Origin: Octopus sinensis | Taxonomy: Eukaryota | NCBI RefSeq assembly: GCF_006345805.1 | Contig: NC_043008.1 | Span: 49,786,001-49,850,000 of the forward strand | Direction of reading: 5' to 3' | DNA length: 64,000 bases | Shown here: in pieces, positions 14,400 to 64,000 of the stretch | Position numbering within the stretch: position 1 is the stretch's first letter | Layout of the letters: each line of letters starts with the position of its first letter | Program-made: the position numbers and the translations under genes | The notes under the pieces: generated by a model | The model's input: only the letters and a program-made list of their open reading frames with translations | The model's database searches: none | Told to the model about the DNA's origin: nothing

Positions 14400-15910
14400 A
14401 GTAAATACATATTTATTTTTATGTGGACAAGAAATGTTTTTTCATCCCTCAGGTTAAGTAAAGGAAATGTGGCCATTCAAACAAAGAAGACACTTCTTAT
14501 TTCTTATATTGTTGCTAGGTGCAGTAACCAAGATATTCCATTTGAAATTAAAATTAATTTTTTATCTTTAAGCTCCCAAATGAATTTACTTAGACCTGTT
14601 AAATTCTGTCTTTTCTTATTTTGAAATATATATAAATGTTTTTGGTGCAAATGGCTTTTTATACAGCACCATGTTTACAATCCTGTAAGTAATAATAATG
14701 GTATCTATAAAGATACCATTAAAGCTTATGGCACTCACAGTGCAATGACTAAGGAATATAGTCTAATAAAGGGGCATGTAAGCCCTTGACAGAAAAAAGA
14801 AGGCTTTTCTATCTGTGTGGGAGGAAAACCTTTTTTCTGTCGAGGGTTTATATGCCCCTTTATTAGATTATTTCCCTTAGTTATTGCTCGGTGACTGCCG
14901 TAAGCTTTAAGGTTATATAAAAATACCATATATAAATGTGTTGATAAATGCTTCTTCATTTCATTTTTAGTTCATCCAATATAAATATATTTATTATTAA
15001 TTTCTGTCGCAACTTTACATTGATATACAACATTTTTCATTTTACATAAATTTTTAACGATACAGCTATCTTTATTTTTACAATCATGTTTTATAACAAC
15101 TGTCATTTATATTAGTTGAGGAAGGGGCTTTATACATTACTGATTCCCGATTGTTATTAATAAAATTTTGTTTATTAATGAAATAACTAGTAGTATTACT
15201 ACTAATATCTTTTACATTAACCCTGGTATTAGGGGAGTTATTATTAGCACATTTTCTATTTGAGTAAAATAAGTCTAATTTTTTAATTATTTGTAGAAGT
15301 TATAATAGTAGCAAAGTTATGAGTTAAACTATATCCTAAGATAGGAATTCATCTTGTATATTAGCCAATAAATATATTTCTACTCTGTCAGTTATTTGCA
15401 TGGAATCTGGCACTCCCATAGATATATCAAAACAGTTATCCTTTCTCACCCATGATTTATTATTGAAGTTTATAACTGATTTATGTGCTGTTAAAATTAC
15501 ATTAATTTCTTTCATGCTAATAGATGTATATTTCTTGACAAATATCAAGGTGCTATTTAAGATAGAGTAATAATTGTCAATATCTATTTGCAGAAATTTA
15601 TGTTTATATTTATTATTTATATTTGAGAACCATTTAATAGTATTCTGGGCATTTGACCATAATTGTAGTGTGATCTTATTTTTCAAGATCAGTATGTATT
15701 TATCTAAAATTATCTTGCTAAGATTTATTAGGACAGATTAATCTAACCCTTGTATCAATATGAAAATTCTCCTTATGGTCCTTAATTGTAATCCATGGTT
15801 TACTAGGTATTAATGGTTCTGTTTTATCCTCTATATTATAATTTTCCATAATTTTTTTAGCCTCTAGGTTAATTTGTCTAAGGGTATTATTAGGAACTGT
15901 CTTATATATC
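14400..15910 (-). mobile_element. Old degenerate Naiad-like Penelope element (RT to GIY-YIG)
   Basis: ITIKDHKENF..RLICPNK, QIDIDNYY, FDISMGVPD RT motifs; TGLSKFIWELKD...KWNIL...KCLLC endonuclease C-terminus near 14490-14610. Confidence 0.8.
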
Positions 15911-17124
15911 CACCCCGGCAAGCAACATCTTCTCCTCTCCAACATGGACCAGTTCCAACAGGGAGTTGGATGAAGTTCTCCAACACTGGAGGGAACTGGG
16001 CTCATCTGTTCCTGAGAAGGTGGAGGACTGTTGAAGTCAGAGAGCTTGGGACAGCATAATTTCAAAGGCCATCTTTGACTCCTTTTTCATCCAGTTGGAC
16101 CAGTTTTCAAGGTGCCACTTACTGTCTGCTAGCGTCAAATACTCAAGTGACTAGAATGGTGCCATCCCTGTGGCTAATATTGGTGGCCTACTCAGTTTGG
16201 ACGAACTTTGTGTCTCTATTTTTCAATTGTGTTCTCTTTTTTGTCCAATTTTCTAGTTTGATTTTGTAAAATGTATATAAATAAAAAATCTTTAATAACC
16301 AACTCCATCAGTTTTTCAACAATGTTTAAAAAATAAAAAGCAGGAAAACTAAATATTAAGATGATGATGATGATATATTGACCGTTCACAGTGAGGATAT
16401 TGTTTTTTTTTTTTATTTAATCAGAATGGGGTGTGAGATCAAAAGAGTTACAAAGTGTTGCTTTAAATGAATAAAAATTCGAACCACCCCCTGTAAAGAG
16501 ACTGTGATTACTGGTTCAACCTCAAGTATCCCCTGCTTTCCAAATTTCGATCAGTTTTTCACTGTCTTCGATGAATTTATCAACATATTTTGTCCCTGAC
16601 GTCGATGATGTTGTGAATTTCTGCTGCAAACGAGTGGACTTGAAATCATCTTCACATCACAACTTTCTATCTTATAAATCGAAGGTTACAGACAAAATGG
16701 ACTGGCCAAAGCTTGAATGCTTTAGATCATAAAACCACTCTTTACGGGTCCACCTCGGCCTAAACAGCTATGATAGATATAAAAACACACACTTTGAAGT
16801 GTAAAGGTATTGCAATATACACAAATTGTTATGCCGGGCTCCATGCATTAAACCATACTATACCTAGCTAAAAGTGCATAAATTAATCTTAAGGGTCAGG
16901 GGAAATAACTCATCAAAATTATTTTAGAGTAATCTCCTTCACCCATGTTGAAATAACCTTATGGTCTGGGACAACGTTTCACCATCGCTTTTTTACCTAC
17001 GGACCCCTTTGATTCCTATTTTACCTGGATGGACCTTCATAGCCATCCAATGTTTACAAACTCATATTATATTTTTATAATTAAATATTATTAGGAATAA
17101 TATAAACAAAATTGTTAAAATATA

Positions 17125-41624: not shown

Positions 41625-41748
41625 ATGGAATCGGTTGGCTTGGAGATGGATGATATCTTTGGATCTACTGAGGAGCAAGGAGCTGAAAATGAGGACATAG
41701 GAGCTTTACAGAATAATGAGGAGGAAGAGGCTGCTGATGCAGAAGATG
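41625..41748 (+). CDS. TIPIN: TIPIN coding exon 1 (exon starts 41609)
   Basis: MESVGLEMDDIFG...EEEEAADAED acidic N-terminus; donor gtaatt, phase 1. Confidence 0.85.
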
Positions 41749-42490: not shown

Positions 42491-43454
42491 CAGTATATAT
42501 TTAACAGAAAACCATAATAATATTATAACATTTATTGACATAATGAATTATTTAGCCACATGAGTTCCAAGGAAGAAACAGTCCATTTGTGGGACATCCA
42601 AGACTATGGCTGCTAGAGATTTAAGGAATATTGGCTGCAAGTTACGTGGGAAACCTGGACAAACAAGCAAAGCCATTTTCACCACCTCGGGACTTCCTGA
42701 TGTACCGAAAACCACCAGAAATCATATCCTTGGGCTTCCATGCAAGAACCCTTGAAACTGCCTCTTCACAGGGGTTTGAGGCTTTAATGGGCCCAAAAGC
42801 ACATGGCATTAAACATGAGTTGTGTTCTGTTCACTGACGAAACCAGAGTGATCCTTGATGGCTCTGACGTTTGGGCAAATGGTTGGTAGATGAGCATCAC
42901 TAACATTTACGACATCAACAACAGGGTGGAGGGGTCATGTTGTGGGCTGGTATCATTAGGGACAAATATATTGGCCCAGTCAGGTTGCCTGAAGAGGTCA
43001 AAGTAACCACAGCCGCCTACTGCATTCTCCTGGATTCCTGGCTAGATGACATACTGCTGTCACTTCTAAGGAATCTCATATTCATGCATAACAGCGCTCT
43101 CTCCAACTCGGTTCGGATCACCCAAGCATTCCTAGGGTCTTACGGCATACAAGTGAAAGGTTGATGGTGTTGCCGCTAGCATATCCAGATCTCAACCCTA
43201 TCAAAAATCTTTGGTCTATCATTAAACAAGATGTTTATGCTGATGGACATCAATTTACGTTGGAAGATGTCTTATGGGCGACCATCAAAGCTACATTAGA
43301 GGCAGTCCAACCTGCTACTATTTAGAAATTAACTGATTCCATGACTAATAGGGTTCTTGAAGTTATCCGTCGAAATGGCGCTCATGTGGCTAAATAATTC
43401 ATTATGTCAATAAATGTTATAATATTATTATGGTTTTCTGTTAAATATATACTC
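42491..43454 (+). mobile_element. Tc1-like DNA transposon, internally degenerate, 74-bp TIRs
   Basis: TA|CAGT left end; TIRs 42491-42564 / 43381-43454 are 73/74 identical; VLFTDETR, GGVMLWAGI, PDLNPIKNLWSIIK motifs with stops. Confidence 0.88.
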
Positions 43455-46358: not shown

Positions 46359-46452
46359 AAAATACTTTTAATGCCAACATTAACAAGAAACTTGCAAAAG
46401 GTGCCACGAAGAAAGTCGTTCGAAATCCTCAACCGAAGCTGAACGATGCCAG
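46359..46452 (+). CDS. TIPIN: TIPIN coding exon 2
   Basis: KLAKGATKKVVRNPQPKLNDAR (start of Swi3 domain); phase 1 to 2. Confidence 0.92.
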
Positions 46453-48267: not shown

Positions 48268-48343
48268 ACTGAGTGGTGAAAGAGGAATTGCAATATTACC
48301 AAAACTCTTTAAGGATGTGACATTCAAAGGAAACGGTCACGAG
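48268..48343 (+). CDS. TIPIN: TIPIN coding exon 3
   Basis: LSGERGIAILPKLFKDVTFKGNGHE matches Swi3 RL.SERG...FKGKGHE. Confidence 0.95.
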
Positions 48344-50300: not shown

Positions 50301-50423
50301 GCAAAAGATCTTGACAAAATTCTGAAGATTTTGGAACACTGGGCTCACAGACTTTTTCCACAGATGAAGTTTTCTGATTGTCTTCAGCGTATTGAGAAAA
50401 TTGGGTCTAAAAAAAGTGTTCAG
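50301..50423 (+). CDS. TIPIN: TIPIN coding exon 4
   Basis: AKDLDKILKILEHWAHRLFPQMKFSDCLQRIEKIGSKKSVQ, Swi3 core. Confidence 0.97.
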
Positions 50424-50800
50424 GTTAGTGTTCTTGATTCTAACTCTGTCTTGTTCTAATTTTGGGCTCAATTTTCATTTGTTATGCTGTTCATAATACA
50501 GTATAGGTGTGGCTGTGGTTAAAGAAAAAAATCTGCCATATATAATATATATATATATACATACATATACATATATATATATATATATATATGTGAAATA
50601 GAAAGATGAATAATCTTGTAGTAGATTAATCAAAAGTTTAACCGATACCTTAGTAGCAAAAATCACAGCAGTGAACAGCACGGTTGGAGGTACAACCATC
50701 TGGCGTTGCAACCGTGCGTTGGTGCGGATAATTGAAATTAAAACATTATTGGTGAATTGAAGAAATGGAGCTGAACGCAGATTGAACAGAAATCGTTTTA

Positions 50801-50889
50801 TTTCATTCTACACGTGTTTCGAAAGGCACAAATTACCAAAATCCGATTGAATAATGGGACCATATTGTGTCTTTCTCTTCAGGAAGAAA
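50801..50889 (-). ncRNA. Inverted copy of the PLE hammerhead
   Basis: Reverse complement of 55333-55421. Confidence 0.82.
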
Positions 50890-51493
50890 AAAGGAAATCC
50901 GTTGGAAAAACAAAACAGAACAGAGGCAGAGCAAAAAACAAATCGAACTGTGCTCCTAAGAGCCCATGGCGAAACTGTTTATCAGTGTATGTTGAGAACC
51001 GGTGGCTGAAGATTCAACAGGTCAGGCATCGGTCAATCATGTGGGTGAGGGTGTATATATGTTCTTTGTGACCGAGAATAAAGTTCTGACTATTTAAAGA
51101 ATATTGGATGTTTTATAAGGGGCGAGAAAAAATCTACTTAGAGACGTGTGTGTGTGTATACTGTTCTATATATGTGTGTGTTGGCGTAGGGGTAGAAAAC
51201 ATTTTTTGTGTACGTGTGTGCGTTTGATCGTTCGGCTGTCAGTGGCTACTGCCGTGATAACCGTTGGTGGCAGAAAGAAAAAAAATAAAGAATTATATAT
51301 ATATATTATGTTTTATGTGTGTGTGTGAGTGTTCATCTAAGCCTGCCTTGACAAGGAAACCCCCCGCTGTGAAAAAACAAGCCCCGTTTGTCTTACAGGA
51401 GTAATTTCCCTTGCAGGGTTAATTGTAGATATCTTAAAATCTATTTCAGAATTTGTTACCAAGGGCTATGGGTGCTGGTCTTATTTATAAACG

Positions 51494-52899
51494 CTATTTA
51501 AAGGCCAGATAAGTGTAACGCCGCCATGGGGGCATCGAAAAGCCGACTGTAAGAGCCCGTTTACCATCCGGCCTCTGGCAAACAAAATGGAAGAGTTCGG
51601 AGACACAAAGGTTGCACTGTCTTCTGCCCCTATCAAATGGGAGGGCCACCGACAAAATTGACCATTCCAGCCTATAGCTTAAGTTCGCATCCTTCAGTCG
51701 CCATATTAGCTTACTGAGTCCCGTGGTCTGGCGCTTGTTCACGTCCCGAAAAGTTGCGTAATGGTTGGAGACACGCAAAGACAATCTTGAGGATGATGCC
51801 CCTATATAAGTGAAGGCATCTGAGTCCGTGTAAACCTTGCATTGGTAGACGGCGTTTTTGATCTTGGAGTTCGCCGACGTGAATCTTACTCTGCTAGGAT
51901 TGGTTTCTGAAATTAGAACTGCGTTCCTGTCACTATATTCGTTCCGAGACCTGCAGCCGCTTACTACTCTATTTTCCACTACTAGTCACTATTACTATAG
52001 GAATAACCCCTGATTCTCCACTATCTATCAGAGTGCTGTCATTGCTACTGCCCGTGGTACTGCTATTGCGGGAAATGATGCTGGGGATGCTAAAGGGGCT
52101 CTCTACCCTACTCCCATTGTTACCATCAACCACAACTCCCCTATTTATAACTATACCCCTAGTGGGTACTCCCTGGCTGGAGCTGAGATTATGTGTCACT
52201 GTACTGGCTCTCATATCATTATTACTACTATAATTATTCCTACTGAGCATTAAACCGGGAGCGGAAGAGGCTGTGCCTCCGGAAAAAGGTGATAGGGTCT
52301 TAGTAAGTAGCCTATTATTATGGGAGGCGATTATCTGGGCGAGGTTTTTAGTGTTGGAGAAAGCTATCCTAACTTTATGTGAGTTAACCGTGGAGTAATA
52401 TTTGGAATTTCTGGGGAAGTTATGGCGATGGCTTGTCTAAACATGAGGGGGAGATTAGTTCTAATCTGCTTACCAAAGGGGATTACAAACCATATATGCT
52501 TATTCCTATCAGTGTGATGGGTCGGGACGCCAGCTCTCGCATTTGGGTGGGTGAATCTCGGATGAATAACGGGTCTTGGGTTAGTGTAAGACCTCCCGGA
52601 GTTAGTGTAAGACCTCCTCTGCCCATTCTATTAAAAAACCTAGCTAACCTGCTCTTAGTTTTCTGCACTATTCTGTTCGTGGTGTTGCGTAAAACAGACA
52701 ATCGTCACGATACAGGCCGCCCGCGATCTCCGGGAATTGATCGGACAATTCGTAGAGAATATATATTCCGACCAATCGGATCTGCGCACTATCCGAACTA
52801 CCCATAGGCACATCAAATTCATTGGGAGTATCCTTACGGATCCACAGCTTATTATCAAACTTAATAAACGATTTCCTGGCAACTAAAATGATATCTATC
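51494..52899 (-). pseudogene. Inverted, internally deleted and frameshifted copy of the PLE ORF
   Basis: ORF pieces 52655-52882, 52483-52701, 51969-52250, 51494-51979; 425-nt deletion with 19-nt insertion at 52601-52619. Confidence 0.9.
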
Positions 52900-52901
52900 T
52901 C

Positions 52902-54725
52902 TTGATAGATATCATTTTAGTTGCCAGGAAATCGTTTATTAAGTTTGATAATAAGCTGTGGATCCGTAAGGATACTCCCAATGAATTTGATGTGCCTATG
53001 GGTAGTTCGGATAGTGCGCAGATAGCCGATTTGGTCGGAATATATATTCTCTACGAATTGTCCAATCAATTCCCGGAGATCGCGGGCGGCCTGTATCGTG
53101 ACGATTGTCTGTTTTACCTGCAAAACACCACGAACAGAATAGTGCAGAAAACTAAGAGCAGGTTAGCTAGGTTTTTTAATAGAATGGGCATGAGTATAGT
53201 TTTTGATAATGAACTCACCAAGGCTAATTTCCTAGACGTTACACTTAACCTTAATAGCGACTCATACTGCCCTTACCATAAGCCTTCCACTAATTTGAAG
53301 TATGTCAGTGTCTTCTCAAATCATGCCAAAACCGTAACAGACAATTTGGTTAAAAACATCTCTCTAAGATTGTCTGGCTTGTCCGCCAGTGCCGATATTT
53401 TTATGCAGAAAGCGGATTTTTATAACGCCGCACTATCCAAGGCCGGTTATAGGCAGAAGGTAATTTATATTGATCCGGCCCTTCCGATGCCATCATTCGG
53501 TCATCAGGATAGGGCCGTATATAATAACATTAACATTTTAAGTAAGGACGGGAGCGCGGCGGATACCGGGGTAGTCGCTCCCGCATTTAATTTAGCGAAC
53601 AAGGATAATTATCGGTCCGGGAGGTCTTACACTAACCCAAGACCCGTTATTCATCCGAGATTCACCCACCCAAATGCGAGAGCTGGCGTCCCGACCCATC
53701 ACACTGATAGGAATAAGCATATATGGTTTGTAATCCCCTTTGGTAAGCAGATTAGAACTAATCTCCCCCTCATGTTTAGACAAGCCATCGCCAATAACTT
53801 CCCCAGAAATTCCAAATATTACTCCACGGTTAACTCACATAAAGTTAGGATAGCTTTCTCCAACACTAAAAACCTCGCCCAGATAATCGCCTCCCATAAT
53901 AATAGGCTACTTACTAAGACCCTATCACCTTTTTCCGGAGGCACAGCCTCTTCCGCTCCCGGTTTAATGCTCAGTAGGAATAATTATAGTAGTAATAATG
54001 ATATGAGAGCCAGTACAGTGACACATAATCTCAGCTCCAGCCAGGGAGTACCCACTAGGGGTATAGTTATAAATAGGGGAGTTGTGGTTGATGGTAACAA
54101 TGGGAGTAGGGTAGAGAGCCCCTTTAGCATCCCCAGCATCATTTCCCGCAATAGCAGTACCACGGGCAGTAGCAATGACAGCACTCTGATAGATAGTGGA
54201 GAATCAGGGGTTATTCCTATAGTTAATAGTGACGTAGTGGAAAATAGAGTAGTAAGCGGCTGCAGGTCTCGGAACGAATATAGTGACAGGAACGCAGTTC
54301 TAATTTCAGAAACCAATCCTAGCAGAGTAAGATTCACGTCGGCGAACTCCAAGATCAAAAACGCCGTCTACCAATGCAAGGTTTACACGGACTCAGATGC
54401 CTTCACTTATATAGGGGCATCATCCTCAAGATTGTCTTTGCGTGTCTCCAACCATTACGCAACTTTTCGGGACGTGAACAAGCGCCAGACCACGGGACTC
54501 AGTAAGCTAATATGGCGACTGAAGGATGCGAACTTAAGCTATAGGCTGGAATGGTCAATTTTGTCGGTGGCCCTCCCATTTGATAGGGGCAGAAGACAGT
54601 GCAACCTTTGTGTCTCCGAACTCTTCCATATTTTGTTTGCCAGAGGCCGGATGGTAAACGGGCTCTTACAGTCGGCTTTTCGATGCCCCCATTGGCGGCG
54701 TTACACTTATCTGGCCTTTAAATAG
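52902..54725 (+). CDS. 5'-truncated Penelope-like RT + C-terminal GIY-YIG endonuclease (607 codons open, no true start)
   Basis: FDVPMGS..LVGIYIL, GLYRDD, FLDVTLNL, IWF..PF..RTN, VYQCKV..TYIG..R..NH..TF, LSKLIWRLK..W.IL..CNLC..E; Naiad-type signatures. Confidence 0.93.
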   Translation: MIDIILVARKSFIKFDNKLWIRKDTPNEFDVPMGSSDSAQIADLVGIYILYELSNQFPEIAGGLYRDDCLFYLQNTTNRIVQKTKSRLARFFNRMGMSIVFDNELTKANFLDVTLNLNSDSYCPYHKPSTNLKYVSVFSNHAKTVTDNLVKNISLRLSGLSASADIFMQKADFYNAALSKAGYRQKVIYIDPALPMPSFGHQDRAVYNNINILSKDGSAADTGVVAPAFNLANKDNYRSGRSYTNPRPVIHPRFTHPNARAGVPTHHTDRNKHIWFVIPFGKQIRTNLPLMFRQAIANNFPRNSKYYSTVNSHKVRIAFSNTKNLAQIIASHNNRLLTKTLSPFSGGTASSAPGLMLSRNNYSSNNDMRASTVTHNLSSSQGVPTRGIVINRGVVVDGNNGSRVESPFSIPSIISRNSSTTGSSNDSTLIDSGESGVIPIVNSDVVENRVVSGCRSRNEYSDRNAVLISETNPSRVRFTSANSKIKNAVYQCKVYTDSDAFTYIGASSSRLSLRVSNHYATFRDVNKRQTTGLSKLIWRLKDANLSYRLEWSILSVALPFDRGRRQCNLCVSELFHILFARGRMVNGLLQSAFRCPHWRRYTYLAFK

Positions 54726-55332
54726 CGTTTATAAATAAGACCAGCACCCATAGCCCTTGGTAACAAATTCTGAAATAGATTTTAAGATATCTACAATTAA
54801 CCACTGCAAGGGAAATTACTCCTGTAAGACAAACGGGGCTTGTTTTTTCACAGCGGGGGGTTTCCTTGTCAAGGCAGGCTTAGATGAACACTCACACACA
54901 CACATAAAACATATATATATATATAATTTCTTTATTTTTTTTCTTTCTGCCACCCAACGGTTATCACGGCAGTAGCCACTGACAGCCGAACGATCAAACG
55001 CACACACGTACACAAAAATGTTTTCTACCCCTACGCCAACACACACATATATAGAACAGTATACACACACACACGTCTCTAAGTAGATTTTTTCTCGCCC
55101 CTTATAAAACATCCAATATTCTTTAAATAGTCAGAACTTTATTCTCGGTCACAAAGAACATATATACACCCTCACCCACATGATTGACCGATGCCTGACC
55201 TGTTGAATTCTTCAGCCACCGGTTCTCAACATACACTGATAAACAGTTTCGCCATGGGCTCTTAGGAGCACAGTTCGATTTGTTTTTTGCTCTGCCTCTG
55301 TTCTGTTTTTGTTTTTCCAACGGATTTCCTTT

Positions 55333-55421
55333 TTTCTTCCTGAAGAGAAAGACACAATATGGTCCCATTATTCAATCGGATTTTGGTAATTTGTGCCTTT
55401 CGAAACACGTGTAGAATGAAA
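55333..55421 (+). ncRNA. Type I hammerhead ribozyme with extended stem II in the PLE 3' region
   Basis: tttcttc-CTGAAGA(55340)-gaaagacacaa...ttgtgcctttc-GAAAC(55402)-acgt-GTA-gaatgaaa; palindromic stem III acacgtgt; predicted cleavage after 55413. Confidence 0.82.
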
Positions 55422-55474
55422 TAAAACGATTTCTGTTCAATCTGCGTTCAGCTCCATTTCTTCAATTCACCAAT

Positions 55475-55512
<38 letters not shown>

Positions 55513-55797: not shown

Positions 55798-55908
55798 TCA
55801 TGTATTAAACGCATCCGACTTGACATGCCAGTGCTGGATGATGACTTTGTCTCAAACCAAGTCGATGATGAGGATGAAGACGGTAACCCAAACAATACTA
55901 CAAATGCG
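55798..55908 (+). CDS. TIPIN: TIPIN coding exon 5
   Basis: SCIKRIRLDMPVLDDDFVSN matches TIPIN TCLKRIRLDLP...DFVSN; donor gtaagg. Confidence 0.93.
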
Positions 55909-57085: not shown

Positions 57086-57836
57086 CATACATATGTACGT
57101 ACACACCCATGCACATGTTTATATATACATCTTTAGGCACAGCTATAATTGTGTGTTTAAGAAGATCACGTGGTTGGCAGTTCAGTCCTATTGTACGGAA
57201 CCTTGGCTTCTACCATAGCCCTAGACTAGCTAAAGCCTTCTGAGTGGAATTGGTGGAGGGAAACTGAAAGAAGCCTATCTTGTATATATGTGTGTGTGTT
57301 ACTGTCTCATTTGAGTATTGATCAAAATGCTGTGCAGTTTTTGTTTTTGGGTCTTTGTGTTCTGAGTTCAAATCCAGTTGAGGTTGTCTTTGCCCTTTAT
57401 CCTTCCAGAGGTCACCAAAAAAGGGGCAAATTGGGTGAGCATTGAATGGATTGCCTTGTGATTGTTCTTCCAACTCTGTTCTCTGAGTTCAGCTTTGTTT
57501 TTCATTCACGAAGGCCCAGCCCAGTTCTTTTCTTTCTTTCTCAAACCTTGAGCGGAACGGGTTTATTCAGGTTTAAAAAATGTCCACGATATGCTGTGTG
57601 TAATGGCAAGTCTAAAGCTAAATACAATAGCCCTTAAATACTAGGGTTGATATAACTGACTATGTCCTTCCTTCATATTTGTGAGAAGCCTGTTTTAACA
57701 AAGCTGTCTCCCCATTTCTTGAATATAGAAGGGCCCAGGAAACACTATGGGTTGTGCTCACTGTTCCTTCTGAACTATTTTTTAACAAGTAAAACTATCT
57801 CTAATGTGTTTCTATTTTTTGTTTTTATATTTACAG

Positions 57837-58004
57837 GTGCAAATGGATGAAGTAACGGCTGCTGAAGCTGCATGGGATGAAATGATGCGATCTCCAAACA
57901 ACAACAACAACAACAACAGTGTGTCCAGTACATCGTATCTTACATCTCCTCCTTCGGGCTTTTCTACTCCATCAACCACCAACCGTCCACCATCACAAGT
58001 TACT
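57837..58004 (+). CDS. TIPIN: TIPIN coding exon 6 (S/T/P-rich, poly-Asn)
   Basis: ttacag acceptor, gtaaga donor, phase 0 to 0, open frame VQMDEVTAAEAAWDEMMRSPNNNNNNN... Confidence 0.8.
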
Positions 58005-59908
58005 GTAAGATTCTTTGTTTTAAACATTACATATTTACTACACATTTTTTTTTTTTTTACTTTTATATGTGTTTCATCATTTACATTCATTTTCCATGCT
58101 GGCATGGATTGGATAGCTTGACTGGAGCTGGTATGGCCAGGGGTTGCACCAAGTGCGTGACCAGGCTGGAGCATTTCCCAAGCATGACTAACTGAGACTA
58201 CAGATATCATCCAACCATCTCGTTCAGGGTCTCCTGCCGGTCAGCTCGGTTTGAAGACTCTGTCATGTGATTCTTTCCTATGGCATTCTAATCACATGTC
58301 TATTGTACAGGAGCTGTGATCCCTCAATGCAGAGAAGCTCTGGCTTGACCCAGAGAGATTCCCTGATCACTAAGCTACACAACCTGCCAAGTAATGTTGC
58401 TCCAGAGATCCTTCAGACGCACTCCATTTCCCTGACTTGTGTTTGTAGCATCCACTTCATTGTTAGGCTATAAAAGGGAGAGTAAGTTGCACCTTCTGCT
58501 TGTAGACTGGGATGGCATCTTGGACAAGTGCTGGTAACCCCGTAGCCTCCTGTGCTACGGATAGAGTAAAGACGTTAGCAGCAGGATGATGAATAACTGA
58601 CAAGGTGGAAAAGTCCTAGACCAACAGCTTATAATTCCTCAACATTTTCTTCAAAAAATGAAATTGTACAAAGGTTTGAGTCTGGGTGCCCATGAGTTCA
58701 AAGCTTTTTGGACACTGTGGAAGAATGCTTATAATTCCTCGACATTTTCTTAAAAAAATGAAATTGCACGAAGACCAACAGCTCGAAGGCTGCTGTGGCC
58801 AAGCAGAAAATCTGAACCATCAGACAACAGTTGGGCATCAACTAGCAAGTGAGTTGTTACAATGGGGCAGCTTCATTGTTGACTATGCTTGTTGTACTCT
58901 TGTACTTCACTTGGTACTTGGCATAGAGGCCCTGAGAGGCAGTCTGATGGAGGATGACGCCAACTGCTTTATCATGCTAAAGCATTATGTTCAGAAAACT
59001 GTCTGGACAGAATAGTCAACATCAACTTATGATGGACAGCCGTCGCTGAATGTTATAGGTATAAATATGTCATGTCTCTGTGTTTTTCACCATACTACTT
59101 CGCAACTGGTGTTGGTTTGTTTACTTCCCCATAACACTTGCAGTTCAGCAAAAAGACTGATTGAGTAACTCACAAACTTAAAAAAAAATGCAAGTACCGC
59201 AGTTGATTTTTTTGACTAGATCCTTCAAAGTGGTGCCCCAGCTTGGCCTGAAGAACTGAGCCAAGTAAAAGAATTAAAGAAAGAATACTTTATTAATGAC
59301 TGCTAATTAGGGTCTCTCTTTACTTGTTTCAGTCATTTTGACTGCGGCCATGCTGGAGCATCACTTTTAGTTGAGCAAATCGACCCCAGGACTTATTCTT
59401 TGTAAGCCTAATACTTATTCTCTCGGTCTCTTTTGCCGAACCGCTAAGTTATGAGGACGTGAACACACCCGCATCGGTTGTCAAGCGATGTTGGGGGACA
59501 CACACACACAAACATATACACACACATGCATATATACATATATACAACGGGCTTCTTTCAGTTTCCGTCAACCAAATCCACTCACAAGGCTCTGGTCGGC
59601 CCGAGGCTATAGTAGAAGACATTTGGCCAAGGTGCCACGCAGTGGGACTGAACCCGGTACCATGTGGTTGGTAAGCAAGCTACTTACCACACAGCCACTC
59701 CTGCACCTAGGATCAATTATTATTATTTTAATTTAATTTTTAATGTATTAGTATTTTAGAATATTTGTTTGTTTATCCTATTTCATCAATCAACTCTCAG
59801 ACAATACAAACCTCAATAAGGAGCAGTTACCAAGAGCAATGGAGAGTCGTGAATTGTGGAAAAACATGATTTTTAACAAGTGATTTTTCTTTTAACAAAT
59901 TATTTCAG

Positions 59909-60071
59909 GTTCTTTCTGCAGAAATGAAAGAAAAGATTGCCAAGAATAAACAACTTGCTCTAGAAAAAAGGGCTGCTAGATTAGCTGCTAACCAGAACAC
60001 TCCCCAAAGGCAGAATACTTCCCAAAATGAGGAGATTACAGCTGGCAGCCAGAAAACTTCCAACAACCAAG
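59909..60071 (+). CDS. TIPIN: TIPIN coding exon 7
   Basis: LSAEMKEKIAKNKQLALEKRAARL matches TIPIN [24 protein letters not shown]; phase 0 to 1. Confidence 0.93.
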
Positions 60072-60813: not shown

Positions 60814-61742
60814 ATTCTTCTTTCACTGGGACACCTACACCATCTGACCATTCTTTGGCAAACCCAGACAATCAAGACCATCTCCAAGAAGTTTCCCCAA
60901 GGAAAACACTCTCTCAAGAAGATGGTGACAGTTTCAAAAAGACAAATTGTGGTCTTAATGGCAAAACAGAACAAACACCTGGATCGGTTGGAAATTCCTC
61001 AAATGAATCAGATGAAAGTTTAGTTGGGACTGACAGAATAGTTGATGATAACAGAACTGAAATTTATTCTTCATCGAACTTGAATCAGTCAACTGTGAAA
61101 GAGAGTGATGTGTGTCAGAGTGTGGCAGACATGGATCAATCAACTGTGAAAGAGAATGATGTGTGTCAGGGTGTAACAGACATGGATCAGTCAACTGTGA
61201 AAGAGAATGATGTGTGTCAGGGTGTGACAAACATGGATCAGTCAACTGTGAAAGAGAATGATGTGTGTCAGAGTGTGACAGACATGGATCAGTCAACTGT
61301 GAAAGAGAATGATGTGCATCAGGATGTGACTGACATGGATCAGTCAACTGTGAAAGAAAATGATGTGCGTCAGGGTGTGAAAAATATGGATCAGTCAACT
61401 GTGAAAGAAAATGTGTGTCTGGGTGTGACAGACATGGATCAGTCAGCTGTGAAAGAGAATGATGTGCATCAAAGTGTGACAGACATGGATCAGTCAGCTG
61501 TGAAAGAGAATGATGTGCAACAGAGTGTGACAGACATGCATCGATCAACTGTGAAAGAGAATGATGTGTGTCAGGGTGTGACAGACATGGATCATTCAAC
61601 TGTGACAGAGAATGATGTGCATCAAAGTGTGACAGACATGGATCAGTCACCTGTGAAAGAGAACAATGTACTTCAGGGTGTGACAGACACACATCAGTCA
61701 CCTGTGAAAGAGAATGATGTGTGTCTGAGGGACAAATGCTGA
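60814..61742 (+). CDS. TIPIN: TIPIN terminal coding exon 8 with 17-aa repeat array; CDS total 1788 nt, 595 aa
   Basis: tttttctag acceptor phase-compatible with exon 7; 309 codons open to TGA. Confidence 0.8.
61077..61739 (+). repeat. Coding minisatellite, 13 x 51 bp (DMDQSTVKENDVCQGVT)
   Basis: 13 units counted in the translation; unit 7 lacks exactly one codon. Confidence 0.95.
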
Positions 61743-64000
61743 CAGTAAGAAAGCTGGCTAACTCAGATGAATCTGTACAAACTGAATCCCACCATCTTTC
61801 CATCTCGTTGCCTTGTCTCAATATTAAATCTCCATTAGAATTCCTCTGCAGAAACAGAAAAACAATTTTAATCCTTTTGTTACCAAATTCCTGTTTTTTT
61901 TTTTTTTTTTTTTTGTTAACGAAGAATGTCATTAAGTTGATGTTTTGAACATAAATGGACATAAAGTTTTGACGAAAGGTTTTAATTGAAATAACTTTAA
62001 AAAAGTGTTTCTTGGGACCGAGTTTTGATGGGTTTCCATTGAAAGGAGTTGAACCAATGAGACTTGTTATTCACTTGAAACTAATAATAATACCATAAAA
62101 TGCTAGGCGCTGGTGTGACTGTGTGTTAAGAAGTTTGCTTCCTATTCACATGTTTCCAGGTTCAGTCCCAGCTGAGTGACACCTTGGGTAAGTGTCTTCT
62201 ACTGTAGCCCTGGGCTGACCAAATCCTTGTGAATAGATTTGGTAGATGGAAACTGAAAGAAGCCTGTCATGAGTGTGTGCGTGTGTGTGCTTGTGTTTCC
62301 TTGTCTGGAAATGCTGTCCAAACCAGGAGACAATGATTGTTGTAAATGATTGTCATGGTCTTACAAGCTGTCATCTATTTCCAATATTCTGCGAGAAGAT
62401 GTCTGGCCATGGAGAAATATCACCTTGATTGGAAACAGGTGAGGATTGACAACAGGAAGGTCATCCAACTGTAGGAAACCTGCTTCAATAAATTCCATCC
62501 AACCCATGAAAGCATGGAAAAGCGCTTGATAAACTGTGGCTGATGATGATGACTAAATAATTGTATAAGTAGTTGTGTTCTAGTTTTTCGCTGCAGTTTG
62601 TAAGCCATGGTAAATCATTCCTGCCATGTCTTTGGGTGAAGATGGATCCTTATTCTAGTGTGGATGTCTTTTAATTCCATCCACTCTGTAATCCTTATTT
62701 TACCTTCTTTTGTCTTTGAAATCAGTCTTCAAGTTCTAACACCCACCCTACTTTCTTTGTAATTCTTTTATTGTATATTTCTTTTGTCTTTTCAATTGAT
62801 TTATCGTTCTTTGCACCAAACATTTAAGAACCATAATCTACAGACAAAAAAAAGTTTTTAAACTTTATCTTTTTAAAGAAATATAAAAAGTACTTTATTT
62901 ATTTTTTTTATCTTGTATATCATTTCTGAGTATTTGTGTCTCCTTATCTTGACATCATGTGATAGTTGTATATTAGTGTCACAGCGATGCAAGCAGTGTC
63001 TTTGTTTCCAGTATTTTCCAGAAAAGATGGGGAAATGTTATCTTGCTTGGAAACCAGTGAGGGTTGTTGACAGCAAGGGCATCCTGTTGTTAAAAAAAAT
63101 CTGATTCAAATAAACTTCTGATTTATACAAGCATTCGAAAAGTGAACTTTAAATGATTATTATCATCATCATCATCAGGTTGAGCTTGTTGCATGGATTG
63201 CCATGACTCATTCTCTCCTATCCATTCAGTCTGCTGTTGCACTCAGATGTTCTTTGCGAGTGCACTTAGAGTCCTTGCACAGTTGCTTTATGTAGGTCTG
63301 ATGTGGTCTGCTAACATTTGCATAGCTGTGCTTCAGTTCCCAAAGAAGAATACTTCTGATCTCACCCTTTGCTCTCCAGCAATATCCAGCAAATATAGTT
63401 CTTTCTCTGAAAAGTGGTAAATTATCTTACTCTTTTACTTGTTTCAGTCATTTGACTGTGGACATGCTGGAGCACCACCTTTAGTTGAATAAATTGACCC
63501 CAGGACTTATTCTTTGTAAGCCTAGTACTTATTCTATTGGTCTCTTTTGCCGAACTGCTAAGTTATGGGGACATAAACACACCAGCATCAGTTGTTAAGT
63601 GATGTTGGGGGGACAAACATACACACACATATATACGACAGGCTTTTTTCAATTTCCATCTACTAAATCCACTCACAAGGCTTTGGTCGGCCCGAGGCTA
63701 TAGTAGAAGACACTTGCCCAAGGTGCCATGCAGTGGGACTGAACCCGGAACCATGTGGTTTGTAAGAAAGCTACTTACCACACGGCCATTCCTGCGCCTA
63801 CAGAAGTTCTTTCGTAGAGTGTTATTTCCAGATGTCCAGAGCAGCTCAAAGCATTTGTGTACAAGTTCTGTCAATTTTCTTTTCAAACCGCTTTGTTAGA
63901 GTTCATGTTGTTGTACATCCTTATAACAGAACTGACTGCACAACTGTCTGAAAGAAATTTCATTTTAAATTTAATGAAAGCTTAGATTTCCACATTGTTG

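Follow-up and report, generated by a model that had tools for sequence, protein, structure and literature searches.

The Swi3 domain is common to human TIPIN, yeast Csm3 and fission-yeast Swi3, and in the human protein it is followed by a helix whose region has been tied to the winged-helix domain of RPA32 (PMC4227788, PMC7337906). Human TIPIN ends about 80 residues past this helix and has no tandem array. Here we describe a gene on the forward strand of a 64,000-nucleotide (nt) stretch of the Octopus sinensis genome (NCBI RefSeq assembly GCF_006345805.1, contig NC_043008.1, positions 49,786,001 to 49,850,000; hereafter the window, in which all octopus coordinates are counted) that, judged by its sequence, is TIPIN, the Swi3/Csm3 subunit of the replication fork protection complex. 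The octopus protein shares the Swi3 domain, and the helix then follows as in human, but it adds an 88-amino-acid (aa) linker and a 221-aa array of 13 tandem units.

Coding minisatellites, or variable number tandem repeats (VNTRs), in disordered protein regions consist of head-to-tail units with a length divisible by three, and species differ in the number of copies. The octopus array is alike in these respects, with 87% identity between units, although copy variation within the species is at most suggested, by RefSeq isoforms that miss whole units. A second likeness, which serves as a lead only, is offered by the acidic direct repeat of WRN, an example of acidic repeated RPA70N-binding motifs: the octopus array is also acidic, contains hydrophobic residues and belongs to an RPA-contacting fork protein, but it has no sequence similarity to repeats of the WRN type, and its unit has no aromatic residue. 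We lean towards reading the octopus array as a coding minisatellite whose product is a flexible, polyanionic tail, probably disordered, in which a small motif is conserved.

The gene model was assembled by hand, going upstream from exon 8 on the + strand. Its parts, together with the antisense open reading frame (ORF) that spans the array, are as follows.

41625..41748, + strand: TIPIN exon 1, with the ATG at 41625, an open frame that includes MESVGLEMDD, a phase 1 end and a GT donor
46359..46452, + strand: TIPIN exon 2, KKVVRNPQPKLNDA, where the Swi3 domain begins; found by motif search, with AG/GT borders and a phase that matches exons 1 and 3
48268..48343, + strand: TIPIN exon 3, RLSGERGIAILPKLFKDVTFKGNGHE, within the Pfam Swi3 match
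50301..50423, + strand: TIPIN exon 4, AKDLDKILKILEHWAHRLFPQMKF, within the Pfam Swi3 match
55798..55908, + strand: TIPIN exon 5, SCIKRIRLDMPVLDDDFVSNQ, where the Swi3 domain ends
57837..58004, + strand: TIPIN exon 6, a low-complexity linker rich in N, S, T and P
59909..60071, + strand: TIPIN exon 7, of which 59909-59998 is the RPA32C-binding-type helix VLSAEMKEKIAKNKQLALEKRAARLAANQN
60814..61076, + strand: unique part of exon 8, an 88-aa linker rich in S, T, N and D, in frame with exon 7
61077..61739, + strand: coding tandem array of 13 units; 221 aa, 24.5 kDa, isoelectric point (pI) 4.2, net charge -29
61740..61742, + strand: TIPIN stop codon, TGA
61823..61828, + strand: ATTAAA, a candidate polyadenylation signal 81 nt past the stop, by pattern match only
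60955..61962, - strand: antisense ORF of 335 aa that spans the array and is open in Octopus

The eight exons have AG/GT borders throughout and compatible phases, and they join into a coding sequence of 1788 nt without a frame break, which predicts a protein of 595 aa (65.6 kDa, pI 4.5). At the last splice, exon 7 ends at 60071 with a spare G before its gt donor, exon 8 starts at 60814 after an AG, and the G together with AT encodes Asp. The N-terminus encoded by exon 1 is identical to that of the RefSeq O. sinensis TIPIN isoforms. Residues 68-149 match the Pfam Swi3 family (PF07962) at E=1.2e-27, over positions 1-82 of its 83-position profile and with 96 bits, where the cut-off is 25. Among solved structures human TIPIN is the best match (7pfo chain L, 301 aa), at E=1.2e-35 and with query residues 54-180 aligned to human 52-175. 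A second HMMER stretch, weak taken alone (10.5 bits), pairs the exon 7 peptide LSAEMKEKIAKNKQLALEKRAARLAAN with residues 195-221 of the human protein, and AlphaFold2 predicts a helix for this RPA32C-binding-type motif. The array lies downstream of both the Swi3 domain and this helix and makes up 37% of the protein. An earlier interpretation of the window, made without database searches (the sequence-only reading), had proposed an eight-exon TIPIN gene with a phase-compatible exon 8 and a product about twice the length of human TIPIN, which was said to have no such array. These proposals hold: the Swi3 and 7pfo matches give the identity, the borders and phases fit, exon 8 is used in the same way by three RefSeq isoforms, the lengths are 595 and 301 aa, and the array has no counterpart in the alignment with 7pfo chain L. 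The statements that it made about the sequence itself were all correct.

Tandem Repeats Finder reports a single array at 61084-61725, with a period of 51, 12.6 copies, 87% matches, 1% indels and a score of 941. A 30-nt core of the unit occurs 11 times at three or fewer mismatches, always within the array, and never in 100 shuffles. In the protein register, which runs from 61077 to 61739 and agrees with the 13 units of about 17 aa first recognised in exon 8, 12 of the 13 units are 51 nt (17 aa), the last of these being one codon longer, and unit 7 is 48 nt (16 aa). The consensus unit is GACATGGATCAGTCAACTGTGAAAGAGAATGATGTGTGTCAGGGTGTGACA, translated as DMDQSTVKENDVCQGVT; unit 1 is degenerate (NLNQSTVKESDVCQSVA), and unit 13 degenerates into CLRDKC before the stop. 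Unit 7 lacks exactly one codon, GAT, and this 3-nt change is the sole indel of the array, as had been noticed from the letters. The units differ from one another at 2-14 of 51 positions; a higher-order periodicity of three units (His/x/Cys, units 5-13) is weak: units at lag 3 differ by 5.6 nt on average, those at the remaining lags by 6.5-7.5.

The frame from 60816 is open up to the TGA at 61740-61742 with no stop in the array, and the other two + frames have 26 and 12 stops inside it. The antisense strand, which the sequence-only reading had not mentioned, also carries an open frame across the array, and an open frame alone is therefore weak evidence. No Pfam family was found above the cut-off in the 335-aa antisense product. 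As the matching frames of Argonauta carry stops and no Pfam family is recognised, we regard this ORF as a by-product of the repeat and not as a gene.

RefSeq already contains this gene model, under names that are uninformative. Three O. sinensis isoforms, X2 (P0034, 544 aa), X5 (P0001, 511 aa) and X7 (P0033, 401 aa), equal our model save for deletions inside exon 8 of 51, 84 and 194 residues, respectively (153, 252 and 582 nt; within 60985-61725), with three whole units missing from X2 and five from X5. All three retain the exon 7-8 junction SNNQ/DSSFTG and the terminus KENDVCLRDKC, which supports both the predicted junction and the read-through to 61742. Taken together, X2 and X5 include each of the 13 units just as the window has it, and the reference genome therefore carries an identical array. 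Every possible placement of the X2, X5 and X7 deletions in the window sequence lacks GT-AG or GC-AG ends, and with no canonical intron ends ordinary alternative splicing is ruled out as the source of the isoforms for this sequence. The 153-nt and 252-nt deletions sit between identical stretches of about 25 nt in different units. The deletions are either shorter alleles, reverse-transcriptase template switches or alignment artefacts, and they are the only hint of length polymorphism within the species.

Among the databases searched we found three cephalopod TIPINs, one of them that of Argonauta hians (GAB1605983.1, P0002), an orthologue with 80% identity to the octopus protein in the Swi3 region and 77% in the RPA helix. 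Its terminal ORF stops directly after an array at 15762-16145 of the Argonauta locus (L001), and this array has the same core, DMDQSTV…VC.G, in the same frame as in Octopus. Tandem Repeats Finder gives a period of 54 at 65% matches and of 108 at 80%. The Argonauta array consists of seven units of 18 aa in two alternating types, A and B (DMDQSTVAIDSKVCHGLS and DLDKSILAMDTEVCQDDV), which form a super-unit of 36 aa, whereas the Octopus units are of one type throughout; the Argonauta units align one to one with those of Octopus. Type-A units match the Octopus consensus at z of about 7, with none of 1000 shuffles as good, whereas the 112-residue linker upstream of the array has 23% identity between the two species (z=1.8), no better than shuffles. 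The TIPIN frame alone is stop-free in both species, Argonauta's five other frames being closed. In the two best-matching of the seven Argonauta units, chosen post hoc, the codons for DMDQSTV (GACATGGATCAGTCAACTGTG in Octopus, GATATGGACCAGTCCACTGTT in Argonauta) differ at four of seven third positions, all synonymously and with no replacement, which makes the argument from non-synonymous and synonymous change (dN/dS) a qualitative one. Both arrays have the core Ser (Ser5, invariant in 20 of 20 units), a strong negative charge, a beta-prone composition rich in Val, Ile and Thr, and an extreme C-terminal position, and a V/L-Cys pair is present in all seven Argonauta units and in 8 of the 13 Octopus units.

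Because the array is in the same frame in Argonauta, with a core kept despite synonymous changes beside a linker that has diverged, we conclude from the sequences that it is coding and translated, at the very C-terminus of TIPIN; qualitatively, it also appears to be under more constraint than its surroundings. The sequence-only reading had argued for coding constraint from the one-codon deletion in unit 7. That argument is weak, and since variation within the array is near chance (10 synonymous against 22-23 non-synonymous variants) constraint shows only across species. Octopus and Argonauta are incirrate octopods of different families, Octopodidae and Argonautidae, and homologous arrays in both indicate that the array predates their split and, on this comparison, was present in the common ancestor of the two families. 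Unit number (13 and 7), unit length (17 and 18 aa) and organisation have changed since. The proposal that the array is lineage-specific stands only at the level of octopods, since A. hians has a homologous array. The one decapodiform TIPIN, that of Acanthosepion pharaonis (P0035), shows no RPA-helix exon, terminal exon or repeat, on a contig that ends 2.3 kb past exon 6; no further cephalopod TIPINs were found in the databases searched, and no published description of the array in a literature search for TIPIN and cephalopods.

Outside the cephalopods, long TIPINs with repeats in the tail are widespread. A periodicity scan of 205 fetched TIPIN sequences, a few isoform duplicates included, found tandem repeats in 28 (about one in eight), all of them downstream of the RPA helix and with mutually unrelated units. 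Repeats unrelated to that of Octopus sit in the tails of a chiton, scallops, mussels, gastropods, a nemertean, an acorn worm, fishes, an isopod, a crayfish and a butterfly. Repeats are also present in the TIPINs of Mytilus, Aricia and Cherax; the others measured are listed here.

Saccoglossus: 10-aa unit, 8.6 copies
Gadus: 10-aa unit, 7.4 copies
Liolophura: 14-aa unit, 6.4 copies
Pecten maximus: 13-aa unit, 5.9 copies
Armadillidium: 21-aa unit, 3.6 copies
Patella: 26-aa unit, 4 copies
Gigantopelta: 23-aa unit, 3.7 copies
Tubulanus: 16-aa unit, 4 copies

No array in the sample is as long and as regular as that of Octopus (score 91; all others 66 or below). Lengths run from about 240 to 650 aa among animal TIPINs and from 285 to 306 aa among the mammalian ones found; long examples are those of Gigantopelta (651 aa), Mya (610-619 aa), Patella (575 aa), Tubulanus (556 aa) and Owenia (521 aa). 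The length of the octopus protein, which the sequence-only reading had set against that of human TIPIN, is thus not unusual, many invertebrate TIPINs being much longer than those of mammals and unrelated tail repeats occurring in many phyla. These tails resemble that of Octopus in site, in their S/T/acidic composition and in lengthening the protein (to 425-650 aa), but their unit sequences are unrelated to the octopod unit. A hidden Markov model (HMM) built from the 20 octopod units scored at best 0.7 bits against about 200 non-cephalopod TIPINs, compared with 0.5 bits for a reversed-sequence control. Descent of the unit from the bivalve motif (D/S)xEMSEVIPLV or from Patella QDSTVCDKN…EMSSEVCLGKN was rejected, the HMM doing no better than the control. 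As far as these sequence data go, the unit is octopod-specific and the phenomenon widespread.

Shorter motifs were also seen in these tails. Bivalve TIPINs (P0005, P0007-P0010, P0013, P0038 and P0039) carry two or three copies of a motif like (D/S)xEMSEVIPLV, and several protostome tails (P0027, P0053 and P0049 among them) carry L-N-L-H-L-[ST]-E-[ST]-[ED], with ETEANLNLHLTESES in Tubulanus, TLNLHLSE in Owenia and TLNLVLEFSTEDSE in Priapulus; P0007, a Logan protein that was grouped with the bivalves by eye, has LLLHLSESE. Both motifs are possibly short linear motifs of the TIPIN tail that have gone unrecognised.

The sequence-only reading had pointed to T-x-x-E and S-P-x-K motifs in the array, and both are there: T-x-x-E occurs in nine Octopus units, and S-P-V-K only in units 12 and 13, each time as Q-S-P-V-K. 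A consensus scan counts 23 minimal CK2 sites (S/T-x-x-[DE]) in the Octopus array and three in that of Argonauta. Eight Octopus sites have the strong form [ST]-[DE]-x-[DE], seven of them being T-D-M-D where two units meet and the eighth, TENDV, lying within unit 11. Full CDK sites number two in Octopus and none in Argonauta, which has no S/T-P, and the same scan found no S/T-Q site in either array. The position of the Octopus T-x-x-E is occupied in Argonauta by I/T-[LVA]-[AT]-[VI]. The consensus for SUMO interaction is psi-psi-x-psi followed by an acidic residue or S/T; patterns like it, and Plk1-like patterns, are present in four Argonauta units (I-L-A-V-D and similar) and in no Octopus unit.

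Structure prediction gave an ordered picture that we do not take at face value. Run on the single sequence of the Octopus tail, AlphaFold2 models the array as a beta-solenoid with strands of seven and three residues in each unit, at a predicted local distance difference test (pLDDT) score of 70-84 and a predicted template modelling (pTM) score of 0.50; the exon 8 linker scores about 35. A Foldseek search of the PDB returned weak beta-helix matches only, the best at E=0.076 and a template modelling (TM) score of 0.24, with none at E<0.07 or TM>0.29. For Argonauta a single model gives the array a pLDDT of 55-75, and its strand pattern differs from that of Octopus; in the remaining four the average over the whole protein is 30-34. 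The genuine Swi3 domain scores below 50 in that run while the array scores higher, so that confidence there tracks repetitiveness, and AlphaFold2 beta-solenoids on near-perfect repeats are a documented artefact (Pratt et al.). A charge-hydropathy plot places the array of Octopus among disordered sequences and that of Argonauta on the borderline. The predicted beta-solenoid is thus not supported, and there is a practical warning in this: AlphaFold2 confidence on near-perfect repeats is no evidence of a fold.

If the array is indeed a coding minisatellite forming a flexible acidic tail, it would grow and shrink by slippage or unequal exchange of whole units, and most unit positions would drift nearly freely, while selection would preserve the frame, the strongly negative charge and the core [DN]-x-[DN]-[QK]-S-[TI]-[VLA] … [VL]-C-x-[GD]. 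The resulting tail would most likely be polyanionic, flexible and prone to beta structure, and it would display a single short motif many times over. Anchored at the fork through the Swi3 domain, beside the RPA-binding helix, such a tail may act by avidity on a basic partner, candidates being the RPA70 N-terminal cleft, histones and the DNA-binding surfaces of TIMELESS. Given the adjoining RPA-binding helix, we infer that RPA or another basic fork component would be the most natural partner. Several observations weigh against this account. The 33 distinct variants among the Octopus units are spread evenly over the codon positions (10/10/13), they divide into 10 synonymous and 22-23 non-synonymous changes where about 24% synonymous are expected by chance, and the never-changing residues (4 of 17) are about as many as chance predicts; differences of this kind look close to neutral. 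Of the consensus patterns tested, those for kinases and SUMO interaction included, none is common to the two arrays. The comparison of core codons rests on the selected units described above, one of the three cephalopod TIPINs ends before the tail, and the AlphaFold2 solenoid of the Octopus array would, if real, be at odds with disorder.

The near-neutral variation of the Octopus units is also what would be seen if the array were translated and had no function of its own, the tail simply tolerating a minisatellite and the likeness to Argonauta reflecting ancestry and concerted evolution. Unit number, length and organisation differ between the two octopods, unrelated repeats have arisen in the same tail across many animal lineages, and the HMM of the unit has no signal above the reversed control in about 200 non-cephalopod TIPINs, all of which suit such tolerated junk. 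Against it stand the heptapeptide core with its four synonymous and zero replacement changes next to a linker that cannot be aligned, the frame and terminal position kept in both species while every other Argonauta frame is closed, and the Cys of 7/7 Argonauta and 8/13 Octopus units; we regard this explanation as possible but on the whole unlikely. That the array is not coding at all, being 3' untranslated region, intron or part of an antisense gene with the TIPIN model an annotation artefact, is scarcely credible. The 335-aa antisense ORF is open across the array, the signs of constraint inside it are weak (33 random changes would leave it free of stops with a chance of about 0.23), and a lone indel has a 1/3 chance of being a multiple of three; but the phases of exons 7 and 8 fit, three RefSeq isoforms reach the same stop, Argonauta keeps the TIPIN frame and closes all others, and the antisense product has no family match above the cut-off.

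The sequence-only reading had proposed a scaffold for multisite phosphorylation by CK2 and CDK, which would tune the fork protection complex by its overall charge or by binding that depends on phosphorylation. The 23 S/T-x-x-[DE] sites of the Octopus array, eight of them strong, its two S-P-V-K and a Ser5 invariant in both species speak for this, but CK2 matches are expected in any acidic sequence rich in S and T, Argonauta has three minimal CK2 sites and no S/T-P, and neither species has S/T-Q. The proposed sites are not conserved (23 against 3 for CK2 and 2 against 0 for CDK), so the proposal fares poorly and we hold it to be rather improbable; since the motifs found by the scans are not shared between the species and the core Ser and the charge are, a multivalent acidic tail is favoured over such a scaffold. 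It is very improbable that the unit is one coil of a folded beta-solenoid, with Val and Cys inside and acidic ladders outside, possibly stabilised by metal, so that the array would form a rigid rod. AlphaFold2 places strands in every unit (pLDDT 70-84, pTM 0.50), the weak Foldseek matches are all beta-helix proteins, and the unit is rich in Val, Thr and Cys; yet no match reaches E<0.07 or exceeds a TM score of 0.29, the bias of AlphaFold2 for such repeats is documented, the Argonauta model is poor in four of five cases and differs in strand pattern, the charge-hydropathy value of the Octopus array lies on the disordered side, and about three uncompensated negative charges per coil would be stacked upon one another. 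A bolder version, to which we give little credence, makes the unit not a product of drift but a functional, octopod-specific, Cys-bearing, beta-forming acidic module that acts as a solenoid-like rod or a multivalent array, perhaps on contact with a partner or a metal. If this were true, it would provide the fork protection complex with a new surface for RPA, histones or a redox signal, and the repeated, independent growth of repeat tails on TIPIN across phyla would reflect selection for long polyanionic tethers at the fork.

Other features of the locus concern the introns and neighbours of the gene. Nearly all of TIPIN intron 4 (50739-55483) is a near-perfect palindrome with arms at about 50739-52899 and 52904-55483 around a 4-nt centre, most of its blocks being 100% complementary; it could be a head-to-head pair of mobile elements or a foldback artefact of long-read assembly. 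From its centre runs a 607-aa ORF (52902-54725, + strand) that has no Pfam match and whose mirror in the left arm is split up into shorter ORFs. A YRDD motif and a GIY-YIG-like stretch can be made out in it by eye, and it may be related to Penelope-like retroelements. In intron 1 (42564-43322, + strand) the fragments GGGVMLWAGIIRDKYIGPVRLPE and YPDLNPIKNLWSIIKQDVY resemble, again by eye, a decayed Tc1/mariner transposase. One translated motif recurs in short ORFs around exons 6-8 (57210-57473, - strand; 59478-59612, + strand; 62199-62333, - strand) and is probably a dispersed repeat similar to a short interspersed element (SINE). The upstream neighbours of TIPIN are Yos1 and a Tti2-like gene in Argonauta (L001, 384-4204) and a DNA ligase III-like gene in A. 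pharaonis (L002, 1-8666); a tblastn search of the window with the Tti2-like protein of Argonauta gave no match.

TIPIN is a core conserved protein of the replisome, whose structured part and RPA helix are well studied and whose tail beyond them has been ignored. This tail can double the length of the protein, in octopods it has kept a motif since before Octopus and Argonauta split, and unrelated repeats occupy the same site in many phyla. If the tail has no role, the array would be a clean case of a neutral repeat expansion tolerated by an essential replication protein. If it has one, be it avidity for RPA-coated DNA, the handling of histones or regulation by charge, the octopod array, as a naturally multivalent form of the tail, would be a convenient place to test for it.

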